A stretch of DNA of 64,000 nucleotides from the sequence record OR455461.1; one strand, written 5' to 3'. The notes under the pieces are model-generated. The model saw nothing but the letters and a program-made list of their open reading frames with translations. It did not search any database and was not told where the DNA came from. The position numbers were made by a program, and so were the translations under genes. This document shows, in pieces, positions 1-63,392 of this stretch. The first letter of the stretch is position 1. Each line of letters begins with the position of its first letter.

Positions 1-64
1 ATCTCTCCTCAGAATTCAATTATTATAATATTTTATTCTTTGGAAAATATAAAAAATTAATATC

Positions 65-826
65 TTATTTTGCTTTAATACCATCATTTTCACGCAATTT
101 TCCTATGAGATTAATAAATTCATTATAATTTTTATCTACTACTTTTATATAATTGTATCCTGAATTTTTAGCAACTTCATCTTTTTTCTTTTCTTTAATT
201 TCATCACGTTTTTGATAATGATTATTTTTACCTTTAATTTCTACTAATAAATTAAAATCAGGCATGTAAAAATCAGGCATGTAAAAATGTTCTTTATTAG
301 CAAATTTATAAGGTAATGCTATATTTGATGGTGATAGTACGTTATTTGATCTAAGATCCATTTGCGTATCTAAGAAGTTAAGGAAATCTTTTTCATAAGA
401 TCCTACATATTGAGTAGGCAATCCTTTGCCAGAACTCCAATGATATTTACCTGAAATTCTTCTATTTTCTAACATTTTATTTTGCATATCTGGATCATTC
501 AGTAAAGTTGTTTTACCGTATTTTTTATTCATTCTATCTTTAAATTGTTGTCTATATTTATCTTTACATATTTTATCGTGTACACGCTCATACTTTTCAG
601 TCTGTTCATTAAATTTAGTTGGTTTTCCACATATAATACATGCACCATGAGTTTTTTTATTTCTATAATTAAAATATACATTTGCTGGAGATAAATCACC
701 CAATTCTAAAGGATGTGTTTTTTCCATATGGTTATATAAACCACTTTTGTTAATATACTTTTTATTACAGAAAGGACATTTATGATATTTTGTTGCCATT
801 ATTAAATTCACCGTTCTTTCTCTCAT
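65..826 (-). CDS. Zn-finger PD-(D/E)XK (TnsA-like) nuclease
   Basis: N-terminal C2H2 finger (CPFC..HMEKTH), second CIIC..H..C cluster, C-terminal YMPDF..LLVEIKG nuclease motif; late-promoter motif AACA-N6-TA upstream (844-833, minus). Confidence 0.65.
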   Translation of the reverse strand: MRERTVNLIMATKYHKCPFCNKKYINKSGLYNHMEKTHPLELGDLSPANVYFNYRNKKTHGACIICGKPTKFNEQTEKYERVHDKICKDKYRQQFKDRMNKKYGKTTLLNDPDMQNKMLENRRISGKYHWSSGKGLPTQYVGSYEKDFLNFLDTQMDLRSNNVLSPSNIALPYKFANKEHFYMPDFYMPDFNLLVEIKGKNNHYQKRDEIKEKKKDEVAKNSGYNYIKVVDKNYNEFINLIGKLRENDGIKAK

Positions 827-920
827 TATTTATAAGATGTTGTTTCTATCGTTTATACATAAAAAATTAAGGATATATTATTTTATATAATATAATATTA
901 TATAGTATAAATATTGAAAG

Positions 921-1373
921 TTGGTGAATTATATCGCTAAAGATACAAAACATTTTAGAAAAGAAATATTTATGGCCCAAAATGTATATAACCGTCAAAT
1001 GATGTTAGATGACATGGAAGCCATGGGACAGACGATACAGAATTTAATCATTATGAAACCTGGTACATATCCAAACACTCCTGGTTTAGGAGTTGGTATT
1101 GAAGATTATTTATTTGAAATTTTAGATAATGATACAATTATGGATATAAGTGCCAATATAAATAATCAAATAACAAGATATATAGTTTCTCAGTCAGTAA
1201 ATGTTGAAGTAAGAATAAGTAAATTGGAAAATAGTAATGCAAATATAAATAGTTTAAAAATAGATGTTAATTTATCTGATGTGTTAGATATAAATAACCA
1301 ACAACTATTTTCATTTGTATTCGCTTCAAATAATTTAACTAAGAAAATGATAACTAAATTAGTACTTGCTTAA
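921..1373 (+). CDS. Baseplate wedge subunit, T4 gp25-like
   Basis: PGTYPNTPGLGVGIEDYLFE resembles the gp25/GPW signature; size about 130-150 aa (alternative ATG start at 972). Confidence 0.6.
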   Translation: MVNYIAKDTKHFRKEIFMAQNVYNRQMMLDDMEAMGQTIQNLIIMKPGTYPNTPGLGVGIEDYLFEILDNDTIMDISANINNQITRYIVSQSVNVEVRISKLENSNANINSLKIDVNLSDVLDINNQQLFSFVFASNNLTKKMITKLVLA

Positions 1374-1410
1374 ATATAAAATTAAAAGAAAAGAATGGAG
1401 AATATTATAA

Positions 1411-2862
1411 ATGGTAAGAAAAGCAGACAATAATGAACTTGATAACTTCATGTCAGAAGAGGAATTAAAAGAATTAGGCGTAGAAGCTGATAAAAAACAA
1501 GAAGAAACAAATAATAATCAAAATAAATCACAAAATAATCGAAATAAAAATAATAATAGAAATAGTAATAAAAATAAACGTAAGAAAAATAATAATCAAA
1601 ATAAATCGGCTATTCCGACTCAAAGAAATAAGAATAATCAAAAACAAGATGAAGAAGCTAAAACTGATCATATTGATTTTTCTCAACCAGAACCAGCTCA
1701 AAATTATAAAGACTATGATCATTTAACTCAAAAAGACGAAGAACCTAAATTATCTTCTCCAGCAGAAGATACTGAGTCTATGACTTTAGATCAATTTGAA
1801 AGTCATCAACAAGATCTTAATAAACATCAACAAAAAGTTCAAAAAGAAATTGAAGAACTTTCTAAAATTGATTCTAATGAAAGAAATAATATTTTAAGTA
1901 ATATTAATGTAGATTTAAATAATATTGAAATTATTTCAGATATTGACTATGATGTTAATAAAGAAAATACTAATTTTGTATTAAATAGTAAAGCTACTCA
2001 TCAAGTAGTATTATCTCAATCAGCTTATATTGCTCATATGGAAAGTTTACGTAACCAAGAAATTCTTTCTATTGCAGAATCTATTGATGATGATTATAAT
2101 TCAGTTTTAAAAAGATATCAATTATACTTCCATAAAGTTAATACAAATTCATTAGGAATTAAAAACTTCTCAGATTTTGCTAAGTTAACTTCTGTATATG
2201 ATGTTAGTACTTTAGAATACGGATTATATAATATCTCTTTCCCTGGTGAGACTAAGTTTGATATTAAATGTGGTAGTTGTAAAGAAGAACTTAAAGACGT
2301 TAAAATCTCTAACGATCAATTAATGTCATTTAAAGATGAAGAAGCTTATGAACATGTAACTAAAAATGTTCATAACATTACAACTAAAGAACAAAATGAA
2401 AAGCATTCACTAATTTCTAAAACTGAAAGAATCATGTTAAACGACTCTAAGATTATATTTGATATTATTACACCTACTATTGATAAACATTTAACTGTAT
2501 TAGCAAGTATTCATACAGATGGATTGAGTCCAGAAGAAGCAGATAGATTTAAAAATAACTCAACTGCTTTAATGCATGTTAAAAATGTATACGTACCAGA
2601 TCTAAAATCTCTTAAAGAAGATGGAAAACCTAAATTCCAAAAAATTCCTGAAGAATCACTTCAAGAAATTATGACAATTATTGAGAACTTATCTGTACGT
2701 GATGGGCATCAATTAACTGATAAGATATATGATTCTGTAGGTAAAAATGCTATAGAATATGCAATTAATGGAGCTAAATGTCCTAATTGTGGAAATGATC
2801 TTGGAAAAATTGATATCGATATGACAGAAGTACTTTTCAAGGAAGCTCTTCATTTGGTTTAA
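1411..2862 (+). CDS. Putative tail/baseplate hub assembly chaperone (T4 gp26-like) with low-complexity N/K-rich N-terminus
   Basis: Two CxxC motifs (CGSC, CPNC) near the middle and C-terminus; follows the gp25-like gene; overlapped by an open -1 frame (see findings). Confidence 0.5.
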   Translation: MVRKADNNELDNFMSEEELKELGVEADKKQEETNNNQNKSQNNRNKNNNRNSNKNKRKKNNNQNKSAIPTQRNKNNQKQDEEAKTDHIDFSQPEPAQNYKDYDHLTQKDEEPKLSSPAEDTESMTLDQFESHQQDLNKHQQKVQKEIEELSKIDSNERNNILSNINVDLNNIEIISDIDYDVNKENTNFVLNSKATHQVVLSQSAYIAHMESLRNQEILSIAESIDDDYNSVLKRYQLYFHKVNTNSLGIKNFSDFAKLTSVYDVSTLEYGLYNISFPGETKFDIKCGSCKEELKDVKISNDQLMSFKDEEAYEHVTKNVHNITTKEQNEKHSLISKTERIMLNDSKIIFDIITPTIDKHLTVLASIHTDGLSPEEADRFKNNSTALMHVKNVYVPDLKSLKEDGKPKFQKIPEESLQEIMTIIENLSVRDGHQLTDKIYDSVGKNAIEYAINGAKCPNCGNDLGKIDIDMTEVLFKEALHLV

Positions 2863-3128
2863 TCAATACTGTCGATAGTAAGCAATATAAGAAAAAAGTA
2901 TATGAAGATGCCGCTTATCTTGCTTATCTATTGGACCTCTTTGAAGGGCGTTTAAGTTTTAATGAAATACTTACTATGGATTTGAATATACTTAATTCAA
3001 TGACAAAAGCTAAAGAAAAAGAAATGAAAAATAAACGATTACAGCAGAAAAAGGTTGAATCTGCTACTAGAAAAGATTTTGATAATGGTATGCCTAAGTT
3101 GGATTTACCTAGACATCTTAATAGTTAA
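2814..3128 (+). CDS. Small ORF, probably a -1 frameshift extension of 1411..2862 (tail assembly chaperone GT-like)
   Basis: Frame is open from 2814 (after TGA 2811-2813) to 3128. No ATG/GTG until late, and no SD before the TTG at 2931. Confidence 0.45.
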   Translation, partial: YRYDRSTFQGSSSFGLINTVDSKQYKKKVYEDAAYLAYLLDLFEGRLSFNEILTMDLNILNSMTKAKEKEMKNKRLQQKKVESATRKDFDNGMPKLDLPRHLNS

Positions 3129-3151
3129 TAAAGAAAGGATGGATTTTCCAG

Positions 3152-3445
3152 ATGGTTCTTAGTACAAAAGAAAGTCAGAAAATCCTTCATATTTATGATT
3201 CACTAGTTGATAATGATGAAAATCTTTTATCATCTTTATGTCATTCAAATAAAGGTTTACTTTTTGTAGACCTTTTATATGACATAGATTATAAAATTAA
3301 AGAAGGGTTTTCTAAAGATAATAATGAATTTAATTACATTATATTAGAAACTGAAGAAAAAGAAAAATTAAAAGAAAAAGCTCTTTATAAAAAAAATTTA
3401 AAAATTGAAGACAACAAGGATTCTATAAGAATTTCAGTAGTATAA
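3152..3445 (+). CDS. Hypothetical protein
   Basis: 97-aa ORF with upstream AAGGATGG SD-like sequence; no recognisable motif. Confidence 0.6.
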   Translation: MVLSTKESQKILHIYDSLVDNDENLLSSLCHSNKGLLFVDLLYDIDYKIKEGFSKDNNEFNYIILETEEKEKLKEKALYKKNLKIEDNKDSIRISVV

Positions 3446-3462
3446 AGGAGAGAATTGCTTAA

Positions 3463-5220
3463 ATGAGTGAACATAAGAAAAATAAAAAGTTGGTATCAAA
3501 TATAGTAGATGAAGATTCATACAAAGAAATAGCTGAATTAACAATTGATACTATTTCTGGAACATTAATGAAATCATTAGGTTATTATGGTTCTACTACA
3601 ATATTTGATGACGGTATTAGTAGATTTGTAACTAAAGACGGATATAATATTTTAAAGAATATTAGATTTCAAGACACTATTGCTGCAGCAATATTAAACT
3701 TCATTAAAGAAGTTTCATTATCACTAGTTAAAACTGTAGGTGATGGATCTACTTCTTCAGTAATTAATTCTCAAGCTATGTTTAAAGAAATTAATGCTAG
3801 ATTAAAAGAAAAAGATGATTTAGGTGGATTTTCTCGTAAAGAAATTTCAGATTCATTAAATAACATGAAAGATTTAATTACAGAAGGTTTAAAAGATAAA
3901 TCTATAGAAATTAATGAAGATAATTTCTATAAATTAAAAAATATTGCTACAGTATCAAATAATAATGATGAAAAATTAGGTGAAATGGTTTACGAAATTT
4001 TTTCTCAAATAGGTAAAAATGGTTTTATCACACCTGAAATTTCAGACAATGAAGAAGATTACTACTCATTAACTAAAGGTATTGAGAAAAATAATGCTCT
4101 ATTAGATAATAAATTAATTAATGATAAAGAAAATCATTCAGTTGATTTTAATAAACCTCATGTAGTAGTAGTTAATGATAAACTAAAAGAAGAAGACATT
4201 AAATGGTGTAGTGAGATTGTTACTTCATTACAACCTTTCTCTAGTAAAGGTTTAGTATTTGTTGCACCTAGCTTTTCTAAAGAGTTTATTAGTTGGGTAA
4301 AAGTATTATTAAATGCTAACCGTAATAATGGAGGTTTAAAAGCAGCTGAAGCTGAATTTGAATTATCTGTAGCATCTTACAGTAAAGACCCTGAAGAATT
4401 AGAAGATCTTGCAATATATGTAGGTTCAAATGTTATTGATATGACAATAGATCCAGAAGATTTTAAAAAGAATATTGTTGATAAATTAGAGGATTCTAGA
4501 AGTAATCCATTAAATTGGATGGAATTCCAACAACAATATGTAGGGCGTACTGAAAGATTTGTAATTGATTCTTTTAAAACTCAAATCATTGAAGGTCATG
4601 GTAATAAAACTGAAACTGGTTCTAGAAGATTGAAAGATCGTATTGCAGAAATAAATAACGAAATTAGTTATTTTGCAGATATGAATTCAGAACAAGCTAT
4701 TGGAGAGATTACTACATTACAACGTAGAGCTAATTCTTTAAATAGTGCAATTGCTAAATTATATGTGGGTGGTTCTTCTCAAGCAGAAAAAATCTCTCGT
4801 AAATACTTAGTGGAAGATTCAGTGCATGCTTCTAAATCAGCATTGAAATTTGGTTATGTATCTGGAGGAAATCTATCAGTAAATAAAGTTATCAAAGATA
4901 TTGATACAGAAAAATTATCTGATTTAGATAGATTAGTCCTAGACTTAATTGATATTTCTTCTCGTGAAGTATATCACAAAGTATTAGAAAACTTTAATAG
5001 ATTTAAAAAACCTGAAATAGAATCTATGACTCAGACTTGTATTAGTAAAGATGCAATTTATAATATTAAAACTGCCGAATATGAAGATGATGTAGAAACT
5101 GATATTATAAACTCTGTAGAAACAGATATTAAAATATTAGAAACTACAATTAGTATCATTGGTTTAATTTCATTAAGTAACCAATTCTTAACTAATTCTT
5201 TAATTATTCCACAAGATTAA
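3463..5220 (+). CDS. groEL: Phage chaperonin, GroEL-like (AR9 gp228 type)
   Basis: SLGYYG, VTKDGYNILKNI, VGDGSTSSV nucleotide-binding motifs and YVSGGNLS equatorial motif; 585 aa. Confidence 0.9.
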   Translation: MSEHKKNKKLVSNIVDEDSYKEIAELTIDTISGTLMKSLGYYGSTTIFDDGISRFVTKDGYNILKNIRFQDTIAAAILNFIKEVSLSLVKTVGDGSTSSVINSQAMFKEINARLKEKDDLGGFSRKEISDSLNNMKDLITEGLKDKSIEINEDNFYKLKNIATVSNNNDEKLGEMVYEIFSQIGKNGFITPEISDNEEDYYSLTKGIEKNNALLDNKLINDKENHSVDFNKPHVVVVNDKLKEEDIKWCSEIVTSLQPFSSKGLVFVAPSFSKEFISWVKVLLNANRNNGGLKAAEAEFELSVASYSKDPEELEDLAIYVGSNVIDMTIDPEDFKKNIVDKLEDSRSNPLNWMEFQQQYVGRTERFVIDSFKTQIIEGHGNKTETGSRRLKDRIAEINNEISYFADMNSEQAIGEITTLQRRANSLNSAIAKLYVGGSSQAEKISRKYLVEDSVHASKSALKFGYVSGGNLSVNKVIKDIDTEKLSDLDRLVLDLIDISSREVYHKVLENFNRFKKPEIESMTQTCISKDAIYNIKTAEYEDDVETDIINSVETDIKILETTISIIGLISLSNQFLTNSLIIPQD

Positions 5221-29084: not shown

Positions 29085-29519
29085 ATATGTATAAATTAAC
29101 CCTAACCTCTTCGACTAATTCAAAATCAATCTGTAGGTTAGGGTTAATGTTACTTTTACGAGAAAAGTATAAAGTTGCTTTAATAATTTTTTATATCCTA
29201 TAAAGCATAAGAAGGATTAAAGAAACCAATATATGCATGGAACATATTAGGAATCTTATAGTGATATTTTAATAGTCTAGTTTTTCTTATATTAGGAACT
29301 AAAACTAGAAAACCTAAAGTGTATTAAAGTCAGATACTTATCACAAATTAATGTAAAATAAGTCCTCTTTAATACTTCTTTTTTAATACTTTTTTACAAC
29401 TAAAGATATGCCTTAACTTTAGTTGAATCTAATAAATTAAGTTTGGCATATCACTTAATTTATATTTTATTTATAGCAGGTCTGCAGCCAAGCTATAAGG
29501 ATGATTAATCCTATAGGGT
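29085..29519 (-). ncRNA. Candidate structured RNA (about 430 nt) directly 3' of a tRNA-like gene
   Basis: Dense hairpins, a kissing-loop pair and a long-range closing helix; no ORF. Confidence 0.5.
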
Positions 29520-29604
29520 TGTTCCTAATGAGATTCGAACTCATAACCTACAGATAAATTTTAATTCATAAATCTGTACGCTCTGACCATTGAGCTATAG
29601 GAAC
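29520..29604 (-). tRNA. tRNA-like gene with an expanded anticodon loop (no assignable anticodon; Ile-UAU-like if 11 nt are ignored)
   Basis: Acceptor GUUCCUA/UAGGAAC, D arm GCUC-AAUGGUCA-GAGC, T arm AUGAG-UUCGAAU-CUCAU; anticodon stem UACAGAU/AUCUGUA closes a 16-nt loop; no encoded CCA. Confidence 0.7.
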
Positions 29605-29964
29605 ATAGAAATTTAAAAAAAAATTAAAAGAGTACATTTATCATCTATGCACTCTTTTAAGTAAATAAATATATAATAATATCTATTAATTTTTAATTAT
29701 ACGTAAGGAGGCGTATGGATTTCTATTTAAAACCATGACATATTAAAAATAGAAACAAGAGAAACCAAAGAAACATTTTTAAACCAACAACGAGTGACAA
29801 AGTAAGTTATAATAGAATTTAATCTATTATATTTTTTAGTTAAATCAAAAACTAAAAAAAATCTATAATAATTTGACGAGAATCATTATAGATTTATACT
29901 ATATAGTTAATTAATATTTTTAAATAAAATTTTTTTAATAAATAGGAATTTTAGACCAAAAAAA

Positions 29965-30034
29965 AGCTTATCCGAGGGATCGAACCCCGGACACATGATG
30001 AAAATCATTGCTCTACCAACTGAGCTAGATAAAC
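29965..30034 (-). tRNA. tRNA-like gene with a 4-nt anticodon loop
   Basis: Acceptor GUUUAUC/GAUAAGC, D arm GCUC-AGUUGGUA-GAGC, T arm CGGGG-UUCGAUC-CCUCG; anticodon arm AUGAU-UUUC-AUCAU; no encoded CCA. Confidence 0.7.
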
Positions 30035-30081
30035 TTTCTTCATTATTATAATATATGTTTATATTTCACTATATTACGCTT

Positions 30082-30131
30082 TTAATAAATATAATCTTCT
30101 ATATCAATTTCATTTTGTTTAATTGTCATAT
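30082..30131 (-). repeat. Displaced duplicate of the RNAP beta' gene 3' end (MTIKQNEIDIEDYIY*)
   Basis: Matches 31402-31451 except for three synonymous third-position changes. Confidence 0.85.
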
Positions 30132-31366
30132 ATTCCTGAATTATGATAATACAATTTTCTTTTATTATCAAAAATTTTCATGGGTTCTTTGATTTCTATT
30201 TTATCTTTCATTTTTAAATAATGACTATATTTCATATTATCTAAAGAATTTGTTTTTACTTCTTTTTTGATAATATTTTCTAATTTTTCTTTTAAATTAT
30301 AATTTTCATTCTCATATAAAAATACAGTAGAAAATTTATTTTCTAAAAGAAATAGAGCTTTTTCTTGATGATAATATTTATCTTTAAATATTTCTGAATG
30401 CCAGTAAGCTCCATTACATTCGATAGCTATTTTTTCTTTAATATCATCAATATATAAAATTATATCAATTTCTCTTTTACCAATAAATTTATTATTTTCA
30501 ATATGATAACTATAATTTTCGTTGTCTAAAATTTCTTTTAATTCATCCAATACATTAATTTCAAATAATGAACGTTGTTTAGAATTACATTTACAACCTC
30601 TAGGACGATATCTATCATAATTTATATAATCTTTAAAAATAGTATTACATTTATTACATCTAAATGAATATATAAATTCTGAATTTATACCTTTAAATTC
30701 ATCATAAGTGTTTAAAATGTCTATATCATATTTTTTTAATAAATTCTTTAAATTATAATAAGTTTTATTTTTTCTAATTTTATTTAATTTTTCTTTTATG
30801 GTGTCATTTTTCATAGGATTGTCTACACCATATCTATTGATAAAAGATTCTTTTATTATATTTGACATATTAGGTATTTCATAAATATTATTAGCATCAA
30901 ATTTATTTTTTATTTGATCTTTAATATTTATGAAATTCCCATTATTTTTTAAAGTATTATGTGATTTAGAAGATATTACTTTATTTTTCATAGGATTGTC
31001 TACACCATATTTATCAATAAAAGCTTTCTTTCTTTTAATATTAAAATCTTCTATTTTATTCATATTGCTTGTTCCATACTTATCTTTTAAAGTTTTTCTT
31101 CCTTTTTCATATTTTTCAGGATCTTTCATAGAACAACTTCTAGAACAATATACTCCTAATTTATGTTTATTTTTTACAAATTTAACTTTATTTTTTCTAC
31201 AATACTTACAGTAAATTACAGAATTTATATCATTTCTTATATAGTACATTCTTTCAGATAAATTTACATCTTTAAATTCATTTAAAAAATCAGTGTATTT
31301 AATAATATCATTTTTATATTTATTTAAAGCAGGTCCTTTTATTTTCTTAATTTGTTCTAATTGCAT
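30119..31366 (-). CDS. Free-standing homing endonuclease (YGVDNPMK repeats, CxxC, C-terminal PD-(D/E)XK-like domain)
   Basis: YGTSN/YGVDNPMKN repeats, CKYC..C..C and CNKC..CKC motifs, EIDIIL..IAIECNGAYWHS; own ATATATTAT promoter at about 31390. Confidence 0.75.
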   Translation of the reverse strand: MQLEQIKKIKGPALNKYKNDIIKYTDFLNEFKDVNLSERMYYIRNDINSVIYCKYCRKNKVKFVKNKHKLGVYCSRSCSMKDPEKYEKGRKTLKDKYGTSNMNKIEDFNIKRKKAFIDKYGVDNPMKNKVISSKSHNTLKNNGNFINIKDQIKNKFDANNIYEIPNMSNIIKESFINRYGVDNPMKNDTIKEKLNKIRKNKTYYNLKNLLKKYDIDILNTYDEFKGINSEFIYSFRCNKCNTIFKDYINYDRYRPRGCKCNSKQRSLFEINVLDELKEILDNENYSYHIENNKFIGKREIDIILYIDDIKEKIAIECNGAYWHSEIFKDKYYHQEKALFLLENKFSTVFLYENENYNLKEKLENIIKKEVKTNSLDNMKYSHYLKMKDKIEIKEPMKIFDNKRKLYYHNSGIYDN

Positions 31367-31401: not shown

Positions 31402-32956
31402 TTAATAAATATAATCTTCGATGTCTATTTCATTTTGTTTAATTGTCATATCATGGAAAGACTTCATAGAGCTTGTTACAATTGCTTGAGCTACCTGATT
31501 GACTAATAAACCAATATTTTCTATACCTAATTTGTAAGGGAGTTCTCCTGCACATTTACTACAGATATCTTCACTTGCACAATACATAGGACTTCTGAAG
31601 TTCAATACTTTCCCAATATGCTCATCTACATTTGAAGTAGTTAACAGTGTTAATTGACCTTTTCTTCCTGAATTATCTTCAAAATATCTATAAAGTAAAA
31701 GATTCGCATTATCTTTAGTTAAAGTTAATTTTAATGTATGTTTTGTTCTACAATCAGAACCTTGTTTATCTAATACAGTTGTTTGGAAAGCAGACATAAG
31801 TTTTTTAGCTTGATCATTTTATTATCTATATTTTATTATAGATTAGACTATATCTTATGAATTTAATCATTTCTATATTTAGTCGTTGAACAACTTAATA
31901 AAGTTGATGCTAGTTAGTTTTTAACATTCTAGCAATTAATAGAATTTATTGTGAGCATCTAATTTACCCACCTTCTTGAGTCATTTATGTTAATCTATAT
32001 TAATTTAATATAGATCAGACTATATCAAAAACTCTTTATGAGTTTAATTATATTTAGTCGTTGAACAATCATTCTGATTGATGCTGATTAAGTTTATCTC
32101 TTCTCAGCAATTAATAATTTTTCTATTATTACATTACTATAATAAAGGGCATTCATATACCTAAAGCACGTCCAGCTGAACCAGCAGTCATAATGTCTCC
32201 AAACATATATAGTTCTTCTGGATCAATTCCATCAGCTAAAGAACTCTTAGCAATACGTATTTTACTAGGATCAGCGAAGTTTTTATTTGCTCCACGTATT
32301 AATGCAGTTAACTTGAAGTTATTTCCAAAACTACCTCTTGATCCACTATCATAAATATCAAGGTCTGCTAAACCTTCTAATTCTTCTTTACTTAACTTAA
32401 TTAATTCTTTTTCAATAGCACTAATAGCATTCAATTCTTCACCAGGAGTATTTAATGCTTTACCATATTTCTCTAGTAATTCTTCTTTCTTTTGTTTAAC
32501 TTTATCAGGAGCAACCATCATTGTAGTTGTCAAACTAGAATTAATAAATCCTGCTATAGAGAAACCAAGCCATTGAAGTTTATCAATATACATATTCATA
32601 TCTTTAGTTGTAATAACATCATTAAGTAATAAACTAGATAACTCAGATTGTAGATTTCCTACACCTGATCCTCCCATATCTTTATTCATATATCCTATAA
32701 TAGGTCCTATTTTATTGTCTAATATAAATTTATTAAATATATATCTTCCAACTGTTGTTCTTTCATCTTTACTATTATAAACTAAATCTTTTTTAAGTTT
32801 AAATCTATCGCTAGGATTAAACATTGGTTGTGTATTTTGTCTAAATGCAAATAATTCTTTAAGTTTATCAAGAGTAATATCTTCTTTTTTTATACTTAAT
32901 AAAGTTGATACTTCTTTCTCAGATAAATCTTTTTTATCATAAGTCATATTAACCAA
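31402..32956 (-). CDS. rpoC: Multisubunit RNAP beta' fragment (bridge-helix region), probably virion RNAP; spliced, 3 exons, about 408 aa
   Basis: Exons 32956-32159, 31981-31966 (16 nt), 31814-31402. Joining gives RALG-TQEGG-YQAKKLMSAFQ, equivalent to the beta' ALKTANSGYLTRRL motif; SGSRGS and CxxC also present; late promoter at 33001-32990. Confidence 0.85.
31815..31965 (-). mobile_element. Group I intron, ORF-less, 151 nt
   Basis: P1 exon GUGGGU / IGS GCUCAC with U.G; P4 UGCUAG/CUAGCA; R UUCAACGACUA; S GAUAUAGUC; ends AAAAUG. Confidence 0.9.
31982..32158 (-). mobile_element. Group I intron, ORF-less, 177 nt
   Basis: 5' exon ends GGU, IGS GCC; P2 with GUAA tetraloop; P4 UGCUGA/UCAGCA; R and S motifs; ends AUAAAUG. 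Confidence 0.9.
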
Positions 32957-33272: not shown

Positions 33273-36200
33273 GTGAAGTATCTTAATAGATTAAAGAATT
33301 TAAAATTCTATTCAATTTCAGGATATAAGATTAAAGCTATAGATGAAAATATTAAGGATCAAAAGAAAAACCAATTAATAATTTATAAAGGTTTTAAAGA
33401 AAATTCATTTATAGAATTCTTAAATAGTGGTATATTATATTATCAAAATTTCAAGAATATTTATACTCCTAGAATATATAGAACAGCAAATAGAAAATCA
33501 AGATTAATTACTAATATTTCAGATTATCAACAAGAAATTAAAAGTAAATCAATTAAATCTTATAGAGTTGAAAGAAATGAGAAATTATTTAAAGGAAGAA
33601 ACTATATAGTTGATTCAAGTAAATTTATCAATCTTGAAGATAAATCTTTAATGACTAAGAATTTTAAAACTGTATCAGATTCAATTAAAAATACTTATAA
33701 TAATTTAAATAATCCAGAAGAATATGAAAATTTATTATATGTAATTAATGTAGATGGATACAATAAATCTTCTCAAGAAGCTATTAGACCAAATACAAAA
33801 GATTTTATGTCAAGTTTATTTATGATGATTAAGAATCAGGAAGAATTACCTCATAAAGAAAATCAAAATGTAGTAGCTTTATTTATTTCTATTGAGAACG
33901 GTATAATGTTTAAATTTGATTTTAAAGATTATAATAAATTCAATAATAGATTAAGACAAAGATTAAGAAGAGCTATTGATTTAAATACACAACAAATAGA
34001 TACAGATGAAATTTCTAATGTTGAAGATGATGATAATACAGAAGCTATAGATTCAACTATTAAAAAGAAATCATTTAGCAATGTTAAAGATATTGATCCA
34101 GTTGAATTACAAGATAAGAATGAAGATGAAGTTAATCAGGATATTGAAGATTCTAAGATGGAAAAAATATCTAAGAAAATAGATGATACATTAAGATATA
34201 TTAAATCTAATGATAATATTGATATGGATATTAATGATGAATATAATATTGCAATGATAATTGAAAAAGAATTAAACAATAATAATGATCTTATTGATAT
34301 TGATGAAGATACATTATACAATGATGTACTTGATAAGAATGATTCATTTAAATCAATTAAAAGAGATATTAAAAATAAATCATATATTGGAGACACTGCA
34401 TTAAAGAATTCTAAAAAGATATTATCACTAGCTAAAAATCAAGATGAATATCTTGAAAAATTAGAAGATTTTAGTTTCTCTGAAGATAGTATTATTGATA
34501 GAGAAATTAATGAAAATGTCAATAGTATTAATGATGAAGCAATAAACAATGTATCTTCAAATGATTTTGACTTATCTTATATGAAAAAGACATTTAATAA
34601 AGACTTTGTAAATATTATGAAGAGTTTTAATGATAAGGAAGAAATACCAGTATTCATTAACAAAATGAATGTAGAAGATAATTCAGATTCTCAATCATTA
34701 AAGAATACTGTAAAAGTTCAATTTAAGAGTCCTGATGGAATTAACCATAATGTAAAATTTGATGTACCTAAAATTATTGATGGTAAATATTTAAAATTAA
34801 ATGGTGGTAAAAAGGTTCTAACTAAACAATTAATGATGTATCCTATTGTTAAATATAGACCAGATACAGTTTGGATTACAACTAATTATAATAAATTTAT
34901 CATTGAAAAATTTGGTACTAAAGAGAATTCTGAAACTGAATGGCTTAAAAAAGTTATTGAAGATAAACAAGTACTAGAATACATTAAAGATAAAAATGAT
35001 ATTAATATTCAAAAAGGTAACTCATCTTTAATTAATAAAGAATATTTAACTTCTGTGTTGTATAATAATTTATCTAAAAATATATTAAGATTCTCTAAAG
35101 ATGATTTGATAATTGATTTTAATCAAAGAAATCTTAAAAAAGTTATTTCAGAAAGTAAAACTTTAAGTGAAATTGATTATGATAAAGATAAATACTATCC
35201 TATCGGTTATAGTTCAAACAAATCTAAATTAATATTGTCAAATACTACAGAATCTATTATTTTTAAAGCTACTAAAAGTAATATAGAATCTATGAATATT
35301 AATATTACAGATTATATTATTGAACAACTTGAAGATAATATTGATTTTAGTCTAATAGATAAAAAATTCAGTAAAAATATTCAAGCTAGTAAAACAATGG
35401 CATTTTCTCGTGTTAAAATTACTAATAAATTAATTCCTACAATAGTATTATTAGGTTTCTATAAAGGTTTAACTAGTATTCTTGATCTTTATGAAGTTGA
35501 TTATAAGTTTGTTGAAGAAAATGAAAGAATAACTATTAAAGATAAGAAGAATAAAATTAAATTCCAAAATGGTTATCTTATTTATTCAACAGATAAATTA
35601 AGATATGATTTATTATTATCAGGATTAAATACTATTCCTACTTCACAATATGACTTTGAAGAATTTAATAGTGAAACACCTTACTTAGAATACTTTAATG
35701 ATAAGTTCTATAGTCGTAATGTTGGTAAAGGAATTAAAAATGCATTAGATTTAGCAATGGATCCTATTACAGAAGATGTATTAAGAGATTTAAAATTACC
35801 TGAAACTATGGTTGAGTTATTACTCTTAGCTAATACCATGCTAGAAGATGTAACTGCTAGAGAACACAATGACATGGGAATATATCGTGTACGTGGTCCA
35901 GAACAAGTTAATGCTTTAATGTATAAAATGATTGCAAATGCATATAAAGAATATTCTGACTCTTACAATAATAAGAATCCTAAGAATATTTCAGTTAAAC
36001 AAGACCAATTAATTAAAACTATTATGGAACAACCTACTGTAGATGAAGTATCTGATCTTAATCCATCTTTAGAGATTGATAAGATGACTTCAGTAACTTT
36101 TAAAGGTCCAGCAGGACGTAATAATGAACAATCATATGAACCTGATATTCGTTCATATAGTGAAAGTATGCAAGGCGTATTAGGAATATCTAGTCCTGAT

Positions 36201-38095
36201 AGTAATAAAATTGGGGTAGTTAGACAGCTTTCATATAATTCATTAATTAAATCTACTAGAGGTTATACTGATGGCGGTAAAAAAGATGCTAATGATACAT
36301 CTCTATACACTCCATTAGAATTACTTAACCCTTATTCTAGTAGACATGCCGATAATCAAACATGGATAGTCGGCTTAAAAACTATTTAATTGCTGAAATT
36401 ACTTTAAAGTTAATCAGCATCAATCAAATTGTTCAACGACTAAATAATAGATACTAATTATATAATTAGTAATGATATAGTCTCAACTATGTATAAAGTA
36501 TATAGAAATAAGATAATGTCTCCACGTATTGGAATGACTGGTATATGAATGCCCTTTATTATAGTAATATAATAATAGAAAAATCTTTAATTGCTGAGAA
36601 AATAATAATTAAGTTAATCAGCATCAATCAAATTGTTCAACGACTAAATAAGATTATACCTAAACGGTATTTGATATAGTCTCAGCTTTAATTTATTTTA
36701 AAGAAGTTCATTAAGAACTAATACACAATAAACAAAGTGTATTAAGATAATCTGACTCAAGCCAAGCACGTAATTCCAACAAAAACTAATAGTAAACCAT
36801 TAGTTGGATCTGGTGTTGATAAATCTTTAGCTTATCAATTATCAGATACATTTGCTTTTAAAGCTAAACAAGATGGTAAAGTATTAAAAATTAACGAGAA
36901 AACTGGTTTAATGACAGTAGAATATATCAATGGTGAAAAAGATATTGTTGATATATCTGAAAAATTAGCCAAAAACTCTAACTCAGGTTTTTATCAATCT
37001 AATAAACTTGATCCACAATTTAATGTAGATGACACTTTTAATAAAGGTCAAATACTTGCTAAAAATAATAATTTCTTTGCTGGATCCGGTAAAGATAATG
37101 ATATTCAATTTACTTCAGGTAAATTATCTAAAGTATCTGTAGCTAGCTCATATGGTATTATAAATGCCTTTCATTATAGTAATGTAATGTCAAAAAATTA
37201 TTAATTGCTGAGAAATATTAAATTAATCAGCATCTCTACATTTATAGAGTTCAACGACTAAATATGATTATTCATTAATACTAATGAATTTGATATAGTC
37301 TAATCTATTATAAAAATATAATAGCTAATATAAATGACTTATGAAGATAGTTCTATTATTTCTAGTAGTATGTCTGAAGCAATGTCTACTAAAGTTACTA
37401 TGAAGAAAACAGTAAATATTCCATCAAACACAAATATTCAATATATAGTTAAAGAAGGTCAGAAAGTACGTACAGGTGATCCTTTAATGATATTTGAAAC
37501 TTCATTTGATGAAGAAGGTATTGGTTCTTTATTAGATAAAATCGGTAGTGAATTTGAACAAGATATTCAAGATATAGCTAATCGAGCTGTTAGAAGTAAA
37601 TATACAGGTAATATTAAAAAGATTAATATTTATTATAATGATGATATTGAAAATATGACTGATAGTTTAGCTAAATTAGTTAATAATTACATTAAAAAAT
37701 CAAATGATAAATATAAAGAATATAAATCTGGAGTTAAAAATAATAAAGAAACTTTACCTGGTATTGATGTAGATATTGCAGCTGTAGAGAAAATTAATAC
37801 AGAGAAAATTAAAGGAGAAAAAGTTGACGGAGTTCTTATTGAAATCTTCACTGAATATGAAGATGATATGAGTGTTGGAGATAAAATTAGTTTCTACGGA
37901 GCTTGTAAAACTGTAGTTGCTGATGTAACTCCTCCAAATGAATCACCTTATTCTGAATATAGATCTGATGAAGAAGTTGAAGCTGTATTCTCTCCATTAA
38001 GTATTGTCTCTCGTATGACAGTTGATATTTATATGATGTTATTCACAAATAAAGCTTTAATAGAATTAAAACGTAAAGTAAAAGATATGGTATAA
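33273..38095 (+). CDS. rpoB: Multisubunit RNAP beta subunit, probably virion RNAP; spliced, 4 exons, 1421 aa
   Basis: Exons 33273-36353, 36519-36542 (24 nt), 36755-37156, 37337-38095. Joining restores RHAD-SPRIGMTG-TQAKHVIP (cf. DANRALMGSNMQRQAVP) and SYG-TYEDS (cf. GYNFEDS); VGDK and FSPLSIVSRMT motifs follow. Confidence 0.9.
36354..36518 (+). mobile_element. Group I intron, ORF-less, 165 nt
   Basis: P1 exon GCCGAU / IGS GUCGGC with U.G; AAUUGCUGA, AAUCAGCA, GUUCAACGACUA, GAUAUAGUC; terminal G at 36518. Confidence 0.92.
36543..36754 (+). mobile_element. Group I intron, ORF-less, 212 nt
   Basis: 5' exon ends GGU, IGS GCC; P2 GUAA tetraloop; same core; three P9 hairpins; terminal G at 36754. 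Confidence 0.9.
37157..37336 (+). mobile_element. Group I intron, ORF-less, 180 nt
   Basis: 5' exon ends GGU, IGS GCC; P2 GUAA tetraloop; same core; ends AUAAAUG. The ATG starting the ORF-track 37334 call is the intron 3' end. Confidence 0.9.
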
Positions 38096-61522: not shown

Positions 61523-63392
61523 TTAAGCTCCTTTACTTTTTATTTTATCAGATACTTTCTTAGCTGCAACATTCAATGGAGGTAAACCATGAAATTCTTG
61601 AGCAAAGGATACACTATCTTGACTGTTAAATTTACTAATAAATTCAGTATTAAAGTCATAATTTAATTTGTCTTCTTCATACTTAGGAACTGTCATTGTA
61701 GATTTATCTCGTATTTGAATTTTACCTATGTGTCCTTCAGGAGTTATATTAAATCCTCTAATAATTGAAGGATATAGTGAACTCAAGTCAAAGTCACATA
61801 CATTACTAAATATTCTATTAGATCTAATATCTTTACCTTTAACTAAAATATCTCCCATACGTTCTATTAAAGTCATATTAGCTACAAATCCACCACGTAT
61901 TTTATCTGCATTTGGATCAGATAGTATTTTAGAGTGATTATTACTTAATACAAATCCTTGATTTTCAAAGAAGACAGAACTACGATTTCTTAAACAAATA
62001 GTTTTCTTAAGTGCTTTACTTGGTCTAGTTCTAGTCATATCTACAATAGAGAATAGTAAATCAAACATATTAGTGTTCTTCTCTATTAAAGCAGTTAATA
62101 TGGTATCTTTAATATTATAAAGAATGAATGTGTAATAATCTCTAAAATGTAAATCAGAGATAGAGCCTTCATATACATCCTTTTTAATTCCAGTTTCTTT
62201 TTCACCAACATCATTTAACTTAACTGATTCCATTACACCGTTCGGTTTATTCACATTTGCATATAAAGCTAATTGGTCAATCCAGTTAGTGTATGAGTTA
62301 GTTTCGAATGTAGATGATCTATTAGCTGCATCTGTAGCATTCTTATCTAATCTATAATAAGCTTTTTTATCTTGTAAATCTTTAGAACAGAAATAATCTG
62401 CTGGATCTTCTCCATTAACTTTAATTCTTTCAAATATAGTTGCAAAGTCAAAATCTAGATTCCATGCGGTACATATATCAGGCTTACTAATTTCATTAAT
62501 ATAGTATAAGAATGATTTAATAATTTCCATTTCAGTATCTAATTCATATATTTCAAATTCTAAACCTAAATCTTCTCCAATCTCACTATCTTTATTATTA
62601 TAAATATTATTTAGATCTTCCATTAATTTAGTTTTATCTGTCATAACTTCATTATAATTATCCGTATCATATTTTAATGCAAATGTTAAACATTTACGTT
62701 TACTCCAATCAACTACAGTTATAATATTAATTTCAGCCATTCCTGGTTCAGGGACATTTATATTAACTTCATACAATTGTATAAAGATTAGACTATATCT
62801 TATCAATATCAGTGATAATTATATTTAGTCGTTGAACACAATTAAATGTGATGCTGATTGTCTTTAAACTTTTCAGCAATTAATAATTTTTTAATTGAGC
62901 TACCTAAAACCCAATTACATTTGATCCATCTACCTCTATATCAAATAGACATATATCAATTCCAACTTTACTATCTAAGTTTTGTTTGATATATTCATTG
63001 ATATTATAATCTTCAATATTAATATCAGATCCATGAACATTATTCATTAAATGAAAATCTTTTAATTTTCTAAACTCTTCATAATTACCTGAAGATAATA
63101 TTCTATCGTATTCTGATTTATCTTGAGCATTACCTGCTTCTCTAACTATAGATTTAATAACATCTTTATGTTTACAATGTACAGTTCTAACTTTCTCTTT
63201 TGCCATAGAACCTACAACTTGACCAGGTGGTAACCAATATTCATCTTTAGTAACATAATAGTGCATCATTGGATCCACTATTTCCATATGTTTTTTAGTT
63301 CCATCTTCTTCTTTAACAACCATTACTACTTTTTCTTTTTTATTAGATGTTTCTTTTTTATTCAAATATGTTGATTTTATAAAACGACCCAT
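61523..63392 (-). CDS. polB: Family B DNA polymerase, N-terminal part (3'-5' exonuclease plus motif A); spliced, 2 exons, 571 aa
   Basis: Exons 63392-62909 and 62754-61523 join as DIEVDGSNVIG-F-PEPGMAE (ExoI). AWNLDFD (ExoII), YNIKDT (ExoIII) and DFDLSSLYPSII (motif A) are present; motifs B/C are absent, so the polymerase is split. Confidence 0.88.
62755..62908 (-). mobile_element. Group I intron, ORF-less, 154 nt
   Basis: P1 exon AAUUGGGU / IGS GCUCAAUU (8 bp, U.G); same P4/R/S core; ends AUAAAUG. Confidence 0.92.

Follow-up and report, generated by a model that had tools for sequence, protein, structure and literature searches.

Organization of the virion RNA polymerase beta gene

In the record of Staphylococcus phage AH12 (OR455461.1, 264,661 bp), the gene for a virion RNA polymerase (RNAP) beta-like subunit is annotated as three separate coding sequences (CDSs), and the same is found in the record of phage PB50. 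Is the subunit really encoded in pieces, or is a single gene interrupted by introns? The question was addressed in a window of 64 kb, the final part of the AH12 record (200662–264661), in which the gene spans positions 33273–38095 of the plus strand (record 233934–238756). AH12 is a jumbo phage of 24% GC and belongs to an AR9/PBS1-like group that also includes S6, PALS_2, UFV_DC4 (DC4), SA1, MarsHill, Madawaska, Machias, PB50 and LY01. As detailed below, it is very probable that three miniature group I introns, without open reading frames (ORFs), are spliced from the beta pre-mRNA to yield one subunit of 1421 aa.

In S6 the same gene is uninterrupted (CDS S6_1000, 4254 nt, 1417 aa), and SA1 and DC4 likewise carry one 1417-aa protein. 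BLAST placed AH12 exons 1, 3 and 4 on nt 2–3073, 3094–3473 and 3496–4254 of the S6 gene, with the exon 1 alignment extending 4 nt past the junction at 3069, and exactly 24 nt remain for a micro-exon. Exon 1 (33273–36353, 1027 codons) starts with GTG, ends with CAT GCC GAT and is collinear with S6 nt 2–3069. It is followed by intron 1 (36354–36518, 165 nt) and by the micro-exon TCTCCACGTATTGGAATGACTGGT (36519–36542, 24 nt, phase 0 at both ends), coding for SPRIGMTG as does its S6 counterpart AGTCCGAGAATAGGAATGACAGGT (nt 3070–3093). Intron 2 (36543–36754, 212 nt) precedes exon 3 (36755–37156, 134 codons; S6 nt 3094–3495), which is free of stops and lacks a 5'-terminal start codon, and intron 3 (37157–37336, 180 nt) precedes exon 4 (37337–38095, 252 codons plus the stop; S6 nt 3496–4254), which begins with TYEDS. 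The four exons thus measure 3081, 24, 402 and 759 nt, each divisible by three and in phase 0, giving 1421 codons.

The splice junctions GCCGAT|TCTCCA, ACTGGT|ACTCAA and TATGGT|ACTTAT are all matched by S6 with no gap or overlap, the S6 protein running through these sites as SRHAD SPRIGMTG TQAKH and SSYG TYEDSS. Once the introns are removed, the frame is exactly re-established, as shown by the fit of the intron-less S6 alleles not only in beta but also in the beta' and non-virion beta' genes described below. The original prediction, made from the letters of the sequence, had placed three phase-0 introns and a 24-nt in-frame micro-exon at these very positions; its coordinates and strings for exons, introns and junctions were all correct, both in the sequence and against S6, and the coverage of a protein family profile (phrog_14872, see below) agrees. 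On comparative grounds, the three interruptions would be true introns, far beyond what chance allows, because insertions recur at the same sites in related phages.

Identity of the encoded protein

Exons were searched one by one, with the S6 homologue, intact by nature, as a proxy for the full-length protein. Exon 1 matched the PHROG families phrog_38251, phrog_3148 and phrog_14872, annotated as RNA polymerase beta subunit, with E-values down to 4e-147. Exons 1, 3 and 4 together covered phrog_14872 collinearly (positions 269–1002, 1011–1142 and 1146–1390; exon 3 with E 1e-32), and the gap of 8 positions between exons 1 and 3 is the place of the micro-exon. Exon 4 also matched Pfam RNA_pol_Rpb2_6 (PF00562) over its cut-off (E 5.7e-09). 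Neither exon 1 nor exon 3 had a Pfam match, nor did the S6 protein in its full length, while matches to the PHROG families of RNAP beta were obtained. The expectation that the ORF fragments belong to a single 1421-aa protein was borne out by the intact S6 CDS and by these matches, which support a reading of the fragments as parts of one predicted RNAP beta-like protein. The DC4 orthologue has been detected as a virion protein by liquid chromatography–mass spectrometry, and the AH12 gene is thus assigned to the virion RNAP.

A search of the PDB sequences with the S6 protein gave only marginal matches to RpoB (E about 1e-3), of use solely for motif alignment. By phmmer, the S6 segment RHADSPRIGMTGTQAKH was aligned with EHNDANRALMSSNMQRQ of plastid RpoB, which carries the HxDxxRxxM motif; the E-value is weak and the alignment collinear, in agreement with the proposal that the micro-exon encodes the centre of a DANRALMG-like motif. 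Intron 3 falls within YG|TYEDS, as had been noticed from the sequence, at a position that we take to be that of GYNxED in bacterial beta. The introns therefore occupy the most conserved and catalytically important codons of the gene, those of the DANRALMG-like and GYNxED-like motifs.

Could the gene nevertheless be truly split, with the fragments 33273–36389, 36911–37204 and 37334–38095 translated apart and assembled as sub-subunits? Such an arrangement would agree with the three CDSs of the AH12 and PB50 records and with the natural occurrence of beta and beta' in pieces in jumbo phages. Moreover, intron 3 ends in an ATG in frame with exon 4. Intron 1 ends in ATG as well (37334–37336 for intron 3, 36516–36518 for intron 1), and the introns of the family described below end in AATG, with the terminal G of the intron (omega-G) being the G of ATG; after a phase-0 intron such an ATG shares the frame of the following exon, as it does for exon 4, and for this reason gene callers begin an 'rpoB_2' CDS at 37334. 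In a split gene, however, the eight invariant residues SPRIGMTG would be lost together with the 52 codons of exon 3 that lie ahead of its first ATG, the 5' end of exon 3 offers no start codon, and S6, SA1 and DC4 have a single uninterrupted protein. In addition, the fold of the spacers is that of group I ribozymes, and their guides fit the exact junctions. We therefore regard separate translation as extremely improbable. For annotation, this means that the 'hypothetical protein' and 'rpoB_2' entries in the AH12, PB50 and LY01 records are pieces of one essential virion RNAP subunit.

Structural features of the insertions

When the 1.2-kb region was searched alone, the Rfam group I intron model RF00028 matched all three insertions over its length: intron 1 with 36.1 bits (E 2.8e-07, model positions 1–253), intron 2 with 31.5 bits (E 6.4e-06) and intron 3 with 15.9 bits (E 0.32). 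The alignment recovered the classical strands AAUUGC.G, CAACGACUAAA and GAUAUAGUCU. Folding helix by helix gave P1 and P3–P9 in all three introns, including the P3/P7 pseudoknot and the P3–P9 core; P2 is missing in intron 1 and is capped by GUAA in introns 2 and 3, and intron 2 has additional P9.1/P9.2 hairpins. Minimum free energy folds with short flanks contained P1, P4/P5, P8 and P9 for intron 1 (z = −3.4) and P1, P2, P4/P5, P6, P7, P8 and P9 for intron 3 (z = −3.0). Intron 3, the weakest in Rfam, scored 99–116 bits with the nhmmer profile of the family. The 5' exon ends in T and the intron in G (as TG) in all 15 mapped family members.

The conservation of this core could be followed in an alignment of 30 copies from the AH12 genome. 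RNAalifold recovered P4, P6, P7 and P8; for a single pair, as many as 15 sequences had both partners changed. As the program is blind to the P3/P7 pseudoknot, P3 was counted by script: 97% of the cells pair, with 3–6 pair types per column, compared with 65% when partners were shuffled among sequences (0 of 1000 shufflings reached the observed value) and 29–63% when one strand was slid. P7 (GACTA/TAGTC) is invariant and hence uninformative for covariation.

No sizeable ORF occurs inside the three introns, the ORF list holding just 31 and 44 codons in introns 1 and 2, and none of them has an endonuclease ORF in a peripheral loop. By sequence and predicted fold, the insertions are accordingly classed as miniature group I introns. 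Among other kinds of interruption, inteins were excluded by stops in all frames and by the RNA structure, and group II introns as well as an assembly error were rejected. The intron class had been left unnamed in the original prediction, whose wording in terms of 'isoforms' suggests a spliceosome-like view.

Several points weigh against this assignment. None of the three introns reaches the RF00028 gathering score (50 bits), and at the gathering threshold, as in a scan of the whole window at E ≤ 1, Rfam listed only two tRNAs and no intron. The gathering score is a curated detection cut-off rather than a biological criterion, and the low scores are due to the deletion, in these introns, of peripheral parts of the 253-position model. 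P1 is short in introns 2 and 3, where the exon takes part in just 3 base pairs (GGU/GCC). A very high AU content marks the helices, of which P5 and P6 are weak (3–4 AU pairs), so that unassisted self-splicing in vitro is not assured. Finally, both the splicing in AH12 and its need for proteins are inferred from the sequence.

The same features might indicate that the introns are decayed relics which no longer splice, the AH12 beta gene being a pseudogene or an assembly artefact. Sub-threshold Rfam scores, the extreme reduction in size (151–212 nt) and the weak AU-rich helices would be in line with decay. On the contrary, AH12, Machias, PB50 and LY01 were isolated independently, are propagating and have the same introns; compensatory changes preserve P1, P3, P6, P8, P9 and P10, and the exons are free of stops and frameshifts. 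A relic is thus hardly credible.

Guide sequences and predicted splicing

Each intron is predicted to fold alone and to use its own guide, pairing with the end of the 5' exon (P1) and with the start of the 3' exon (P10). In the first of the two usual transesterifications, guanosine would attack past the U of the P1 U.G pair; in the second, the released 5' exon would attack after the terminal G of the intron. P1 with its U.G pair and P10 are present in all 15 mapped introns.

In intron 1 the guide consists of TGGATA (36363–36368, P10) and GTCGGC (36369–36374, P1). The latter forms 6 bp with the exon GCCGAU, including U.G at the splice site, and UGGAUA faces the first six bases of the micro-exon (P10 scored 6/8). 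The guide GCC of intron 2 (36551–36553) pairs with the exon GGU, with a P10 of 5/8. In intron 3, GCC (37166–37168) again pairs with GGU and the P10 strand lies at 37158–37165 (7/8); these pairings were taken from the LY01 intron at the same site, identical in the first 12 intron and the first 8 exon 4 bases, the script having chosen a 4-bp GTCA alternative.

A change of guide together with its target was seen at the site of intron 1. There, exon and guide read GCCGAT/GTCGGC and TCTCCA/TGGATA in AH12, and GCGGAT/GTTCGC and TCACCTC/GAGGTAA in Madawaska and LY01. The exon differences are synonymous (GCG versus GCC; TCA CCT versus TCT CCA) and the introns carry the matching changes, a co-variation that would be hard to explain unless those exact splice sites are used.

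Within the micro-exon, intron 1 finds its P10 target in nt 1–6 and intron 2 its P1 target in nt 22–24. As these targets do not overlap, introns 1 and 2 would be excisable independently and in either order. Direct joining of exon 1 to exon 3 would produce an in-frame variant of 1413 aa without SPRIGMTG, as a by-product or a regulator. By arithmetic, 24 nt keep the frame; introns 1 and 2 have near-identical P4, P7, J6/7 and J8/7 strands, which makes a hybrid core spanning the two conceivable, and there is a precedent in the tandem group I introns of phage Twort (PMC3073962). Yet the intron 1 P10 guide TGGATA, judged by eye, pairs poorly with ACTCAA at the start of exon 3, and a product lacking an invariant segment of the active centre is more likely waste than function. 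Skipping of the micro-exon is accordingly considered quite unlikely.

A weightier alternative concerns catalysis itself: the minimal ribozymes may in practice need a phage or host protein, such as a maturase-like endonuclease or an RNA chaperone. They have no P5abc or other large peripheral stabilisers, P2 is absent from intron 1, and P5 and P6 consist of 3–4 AU pairs. Many homing-endonuclease genes are present in these genomes, one of them adjoining beta', and intron endonucleases with maturase activity are known in organelles. Against such a dependence, the GNRA-capped P2 and the regular P9 hairpins could provide tertiary contacts, and self-splicing is known from other small group I introns of bacteria and phages. 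Assistance by a protein is therefore a serious possibility, though not the more probable one.

Distribution of the introns in related phages

Five insertion sites, A to E, were distinguished in the beta genes of the group, introns 1, 2 and 3 of AH12 occupying sites C, D and E. The number of introns varies from 0 to 5 among close phages. S6, SA1 and DC4 have none (DC4 as deduced from its 4254-nt CDS). Madawaska has one, at site C, and MarsHill one of 1302 nt with an endonuclease, inserted 7 nt upstream of site D, inside the sequence of the AH12 micro-exon. Two were mapped in PB50 (C, E), three in AH12 (C, D, E), three in Machias (B with an endonuclease, D, E) and five in LY01 (A, B, C, D, E). 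The beta locus of PALS_2 equals that of MarsHill in length. The insertions at Machias site B and in MarsHill contain ORFs for HNH/CapR-type endonucleases.

Intron 1 is missing from S6, SA1 and Machias and present in PB50, and an intron of 75% identity lies at the site in Madawaska and LY01. Intron 2 shares 99% identity with its counterpart at site D of Machias and is absent from S6 and PB50, while intron 3 is 100% identical to that of Machias and 98% to that of PB50. The combination of C and D, which creates the 24-nt micro-exon, was found only in AH12 and LY01, and neither record annotates it. The GenBank entry of Machias gives the beta CDS as a join of four pieces that includes sites D and E, the Madawaska entry joins the exons at site C, and the LY01 record misses the introns, as do those of AH12 and PB50.

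Three distinct insertion sites lie within 24 nt in the sequence coding for HAD|SPRIGM|TG|TQ. Mobile introns are known to favour invariant codons of active sites, and such clustering agrees with this. At site C the serine codon is TCN in the alleles with an intron and AGT in those without, which suggests co-conversion of flanking exon sequence.

Site A of LY01 (locus L006:2081-3730) holds an insertion of 1650 nt that opens with a group I core of the same family (nhmmer 2094–2240) and contains a TnpB/IS605 OrfB gene (Pfam OrfB_IS605, Cas12f1-like TNB). It is an IStron-like composite in a phage RNAP gene.

The intron family in other genes

The nhmmer profile, applied to the AH12 genome with all but about 1.2 kb covered, detected at least 31 copies of the family, 6 of them in the window and 30 with all four core anchors. 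The copies cluster in nrdE, gyrB, genes for RNAP subunits and several genes without annotation, where several neighbouring pairs are about 27–70 nt apart; about a dozen core genes besides beta are interrupted. By blastn, family places numbered 28 in Machias, 28 in LY01, 18 in PB50, 9 in MarsHill and 9 in Madawaska, and no place was found in S6, PALS_2, DC4 and SA1.

Two family introns split the virion RNAP beta' (mid) gene, which adjoins the beta gene on the minus strand (31402–32956; nhmmer). Intron a (32158–31982, 177 nt) and intron b (31965–31815, 151 nt, phase 1) enclose the 16-nt micro-exon ACTCAAGAAGGTGGGT (31981–31966), and the resulting junctions, TAGSAGRALG|TQEGG(Y)|QAKK, match exactly the intact S6_1010. 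An even smaller exon was found in the N-terminal gene of the non-virion beta' (minus strand, locus L012:19055-19422, about 118655–119022 of the AH12 record): here two introns of 182 and 180 nt are separated by the 6 nt GCCGAT, coding for Ala-Asp of the catalytic ADYDGD loop, with junctions checked against S6 (ISNNILAGMG|AD|YDGDTLN). In the Machias record, this intron pair went unrecognised: the non-virion beta' CDS stops inside the first intron and the truncated annotated protein has no catalytic motif.

A further copy interrupts the gene for the exonuclease domain of the DNA polymerase (62755–62908, minus strand, 154 nt, phase 1; nhmmer E 1.5e-25, P1 of 9 bp). It follows FDIEVDGSNVIG, just past the FDIE motif, where the alleles of S6, SA1, DC4 and MarsHill are about 150 nt shorter. 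At the same locus, Machias and PB50 have an annotated HNH endonuclease gene.

In four family copies (L010:11379-11506, L011:20824-20951, L013:3408-3530 and L013:15282-15407), only 7–8 nt separate the 3' strand of P3 from J8/7. P8 appears to be almost deleted there, which a functional group I core would not usually show.

Beyond the Staphylococcus jumbo phages, a blastn search with intron 3 returned only short matches in Flavobacterium phages, judged spurious. A pattern scan of IMG/VR found the sequence pair J6/7-P7...J8/7-P7' at more than 120 loci in large viral contigs; being so widespread, the pair is not specific to the AH12 family. Of 28 cases in which a J3/4-P4 anchor lay no more than 120 nt away, only 3 had an equally compact core. 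The literature yielded no source that could be cited for the size of the smallest group I intron known.

With mapped members of 151–212 nt, the family provides a natural and compact set of minimal group I ribozymes in which covariation is rich, and its small sizes and copy number are its most interesting aspect. It offers a convenient laboratory system for the minimal ribozyme core, for the spread of introns without ORFs and for splicing over very short exons.

Relation to known systems

As a category, the AH12 case is already known. Introns are annotated in the beta genes of Machias and Madawaska, and publications describe intron-split RNAP genes in AR9, MarsHill, Madawaska and Machias. These AR9-like phages are of the same clade and it is the same gene that is split, with the Machias introns at sites D and E 99–100% identical to those of AH12; Madawaska has an intron at site C. 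The part of the published text available to us presents exons predicted by protein alignment, and mentions neither a ribozyme class nor a family size.

The closest likeness in splicing behaviour is with the Staphylococcus phage Twort, where one ORF is split by a trio of similar group I introns without ORFs and exon skipping was observed (orf182; PMC3073962). Phage family and gene differ from those of AH12, and it is in Twort that skipping has been observed. The interrupted ORF was reportedly named orf142 by Landthaler and Shub in 1999.

A comparable load of small introns is known from the Jug jumbo phages, with a mean of 18.5 group I introns of about 206 nt per genome in essential genes such as terL, nrdD and DNA polymerase, about half of them with splicing confirmed by metatranscriptomes (PMC12880540). 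Jug phages are unrelated to AH12 and have Bacteroides as hosts, and the AH12 introns are smaller and more numerous. As for the micro-exons, exons of less than about 4 codons flanked by group I or II introns 'occur regularly' in organelles and are missed by annotators (MFannot, PMC10352661; placozoan cox1). Those cases differ from AH12 in being mitochondrial, with introns that are usually large and often contain ORFs.

Spread and mobility

How copies without an ORF could have spread may be indicated by a free-standing gene just downstream of beta' (30119–31366, minus strand, 415 aa), which resembles homing endonucleases (phrog_3339 'homing endonuclease', E 4e-26) and also matched Pfam DUF7487 and, weakly, REase_MTES_1575. 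Its product is a candidate trans-acting mobility factor. The position of this gene, together with the endonuclease-bearing versions at the same or nearby sites in relatives, points to trans-acting or collaborative homing, in which an intron without an ORF is combined with a free-standing homing endonuclease (PMC3984707). AH12 resembles that system in its ORF-less introns at conserved sites and in the nearby endonuclease gene, although the pairing of endonuclease and targets is only putative.

Besides free-standing endonucleases acting in trans, recombination during co-infection and guide-directed reverse splicing are possible routes. The intron at site D of beta and intron a of beta' have near-identical 5' guide regions and a common target, GGT^ACTCAAG, which would also fit a guide-directed ectopic insertion. 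AH12-group phages encode a reverse transcriptase, so that reverse splicing with subsequent recombination of the cDNA can be envisaged. A bolder scenario can be drawn from these features: the family, in which some members lack P2 and, it appears, nearly the whole of P8, could count the smallest natural self-splicing group I ribozymes among its copies and may have multiplied in the manner of miniature inverted-repeat transposable elements (MITEs), reaching at least 31 copies through ectopic insertion directed by the guides. The micro-exons of 24, 16 and 6 nt in polymerase catalytic motifs would then constrain the expression of both phage RNAPs through ordered splicing or exon skipping. Taken as a whole, we consider this scenario rather unlikely.

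Near the endonuclease-like gene, two tRNA genes are present on the minus strand of the window, at 29517–29605 and 29964–30035 (Rfam, 60 and 46 bits). Both were reported by ARAGORN as tRNA-??? with a non-standard anticodon loop, and the one at 29517–29605 has a 14-nt insertion in the anticodon arm.

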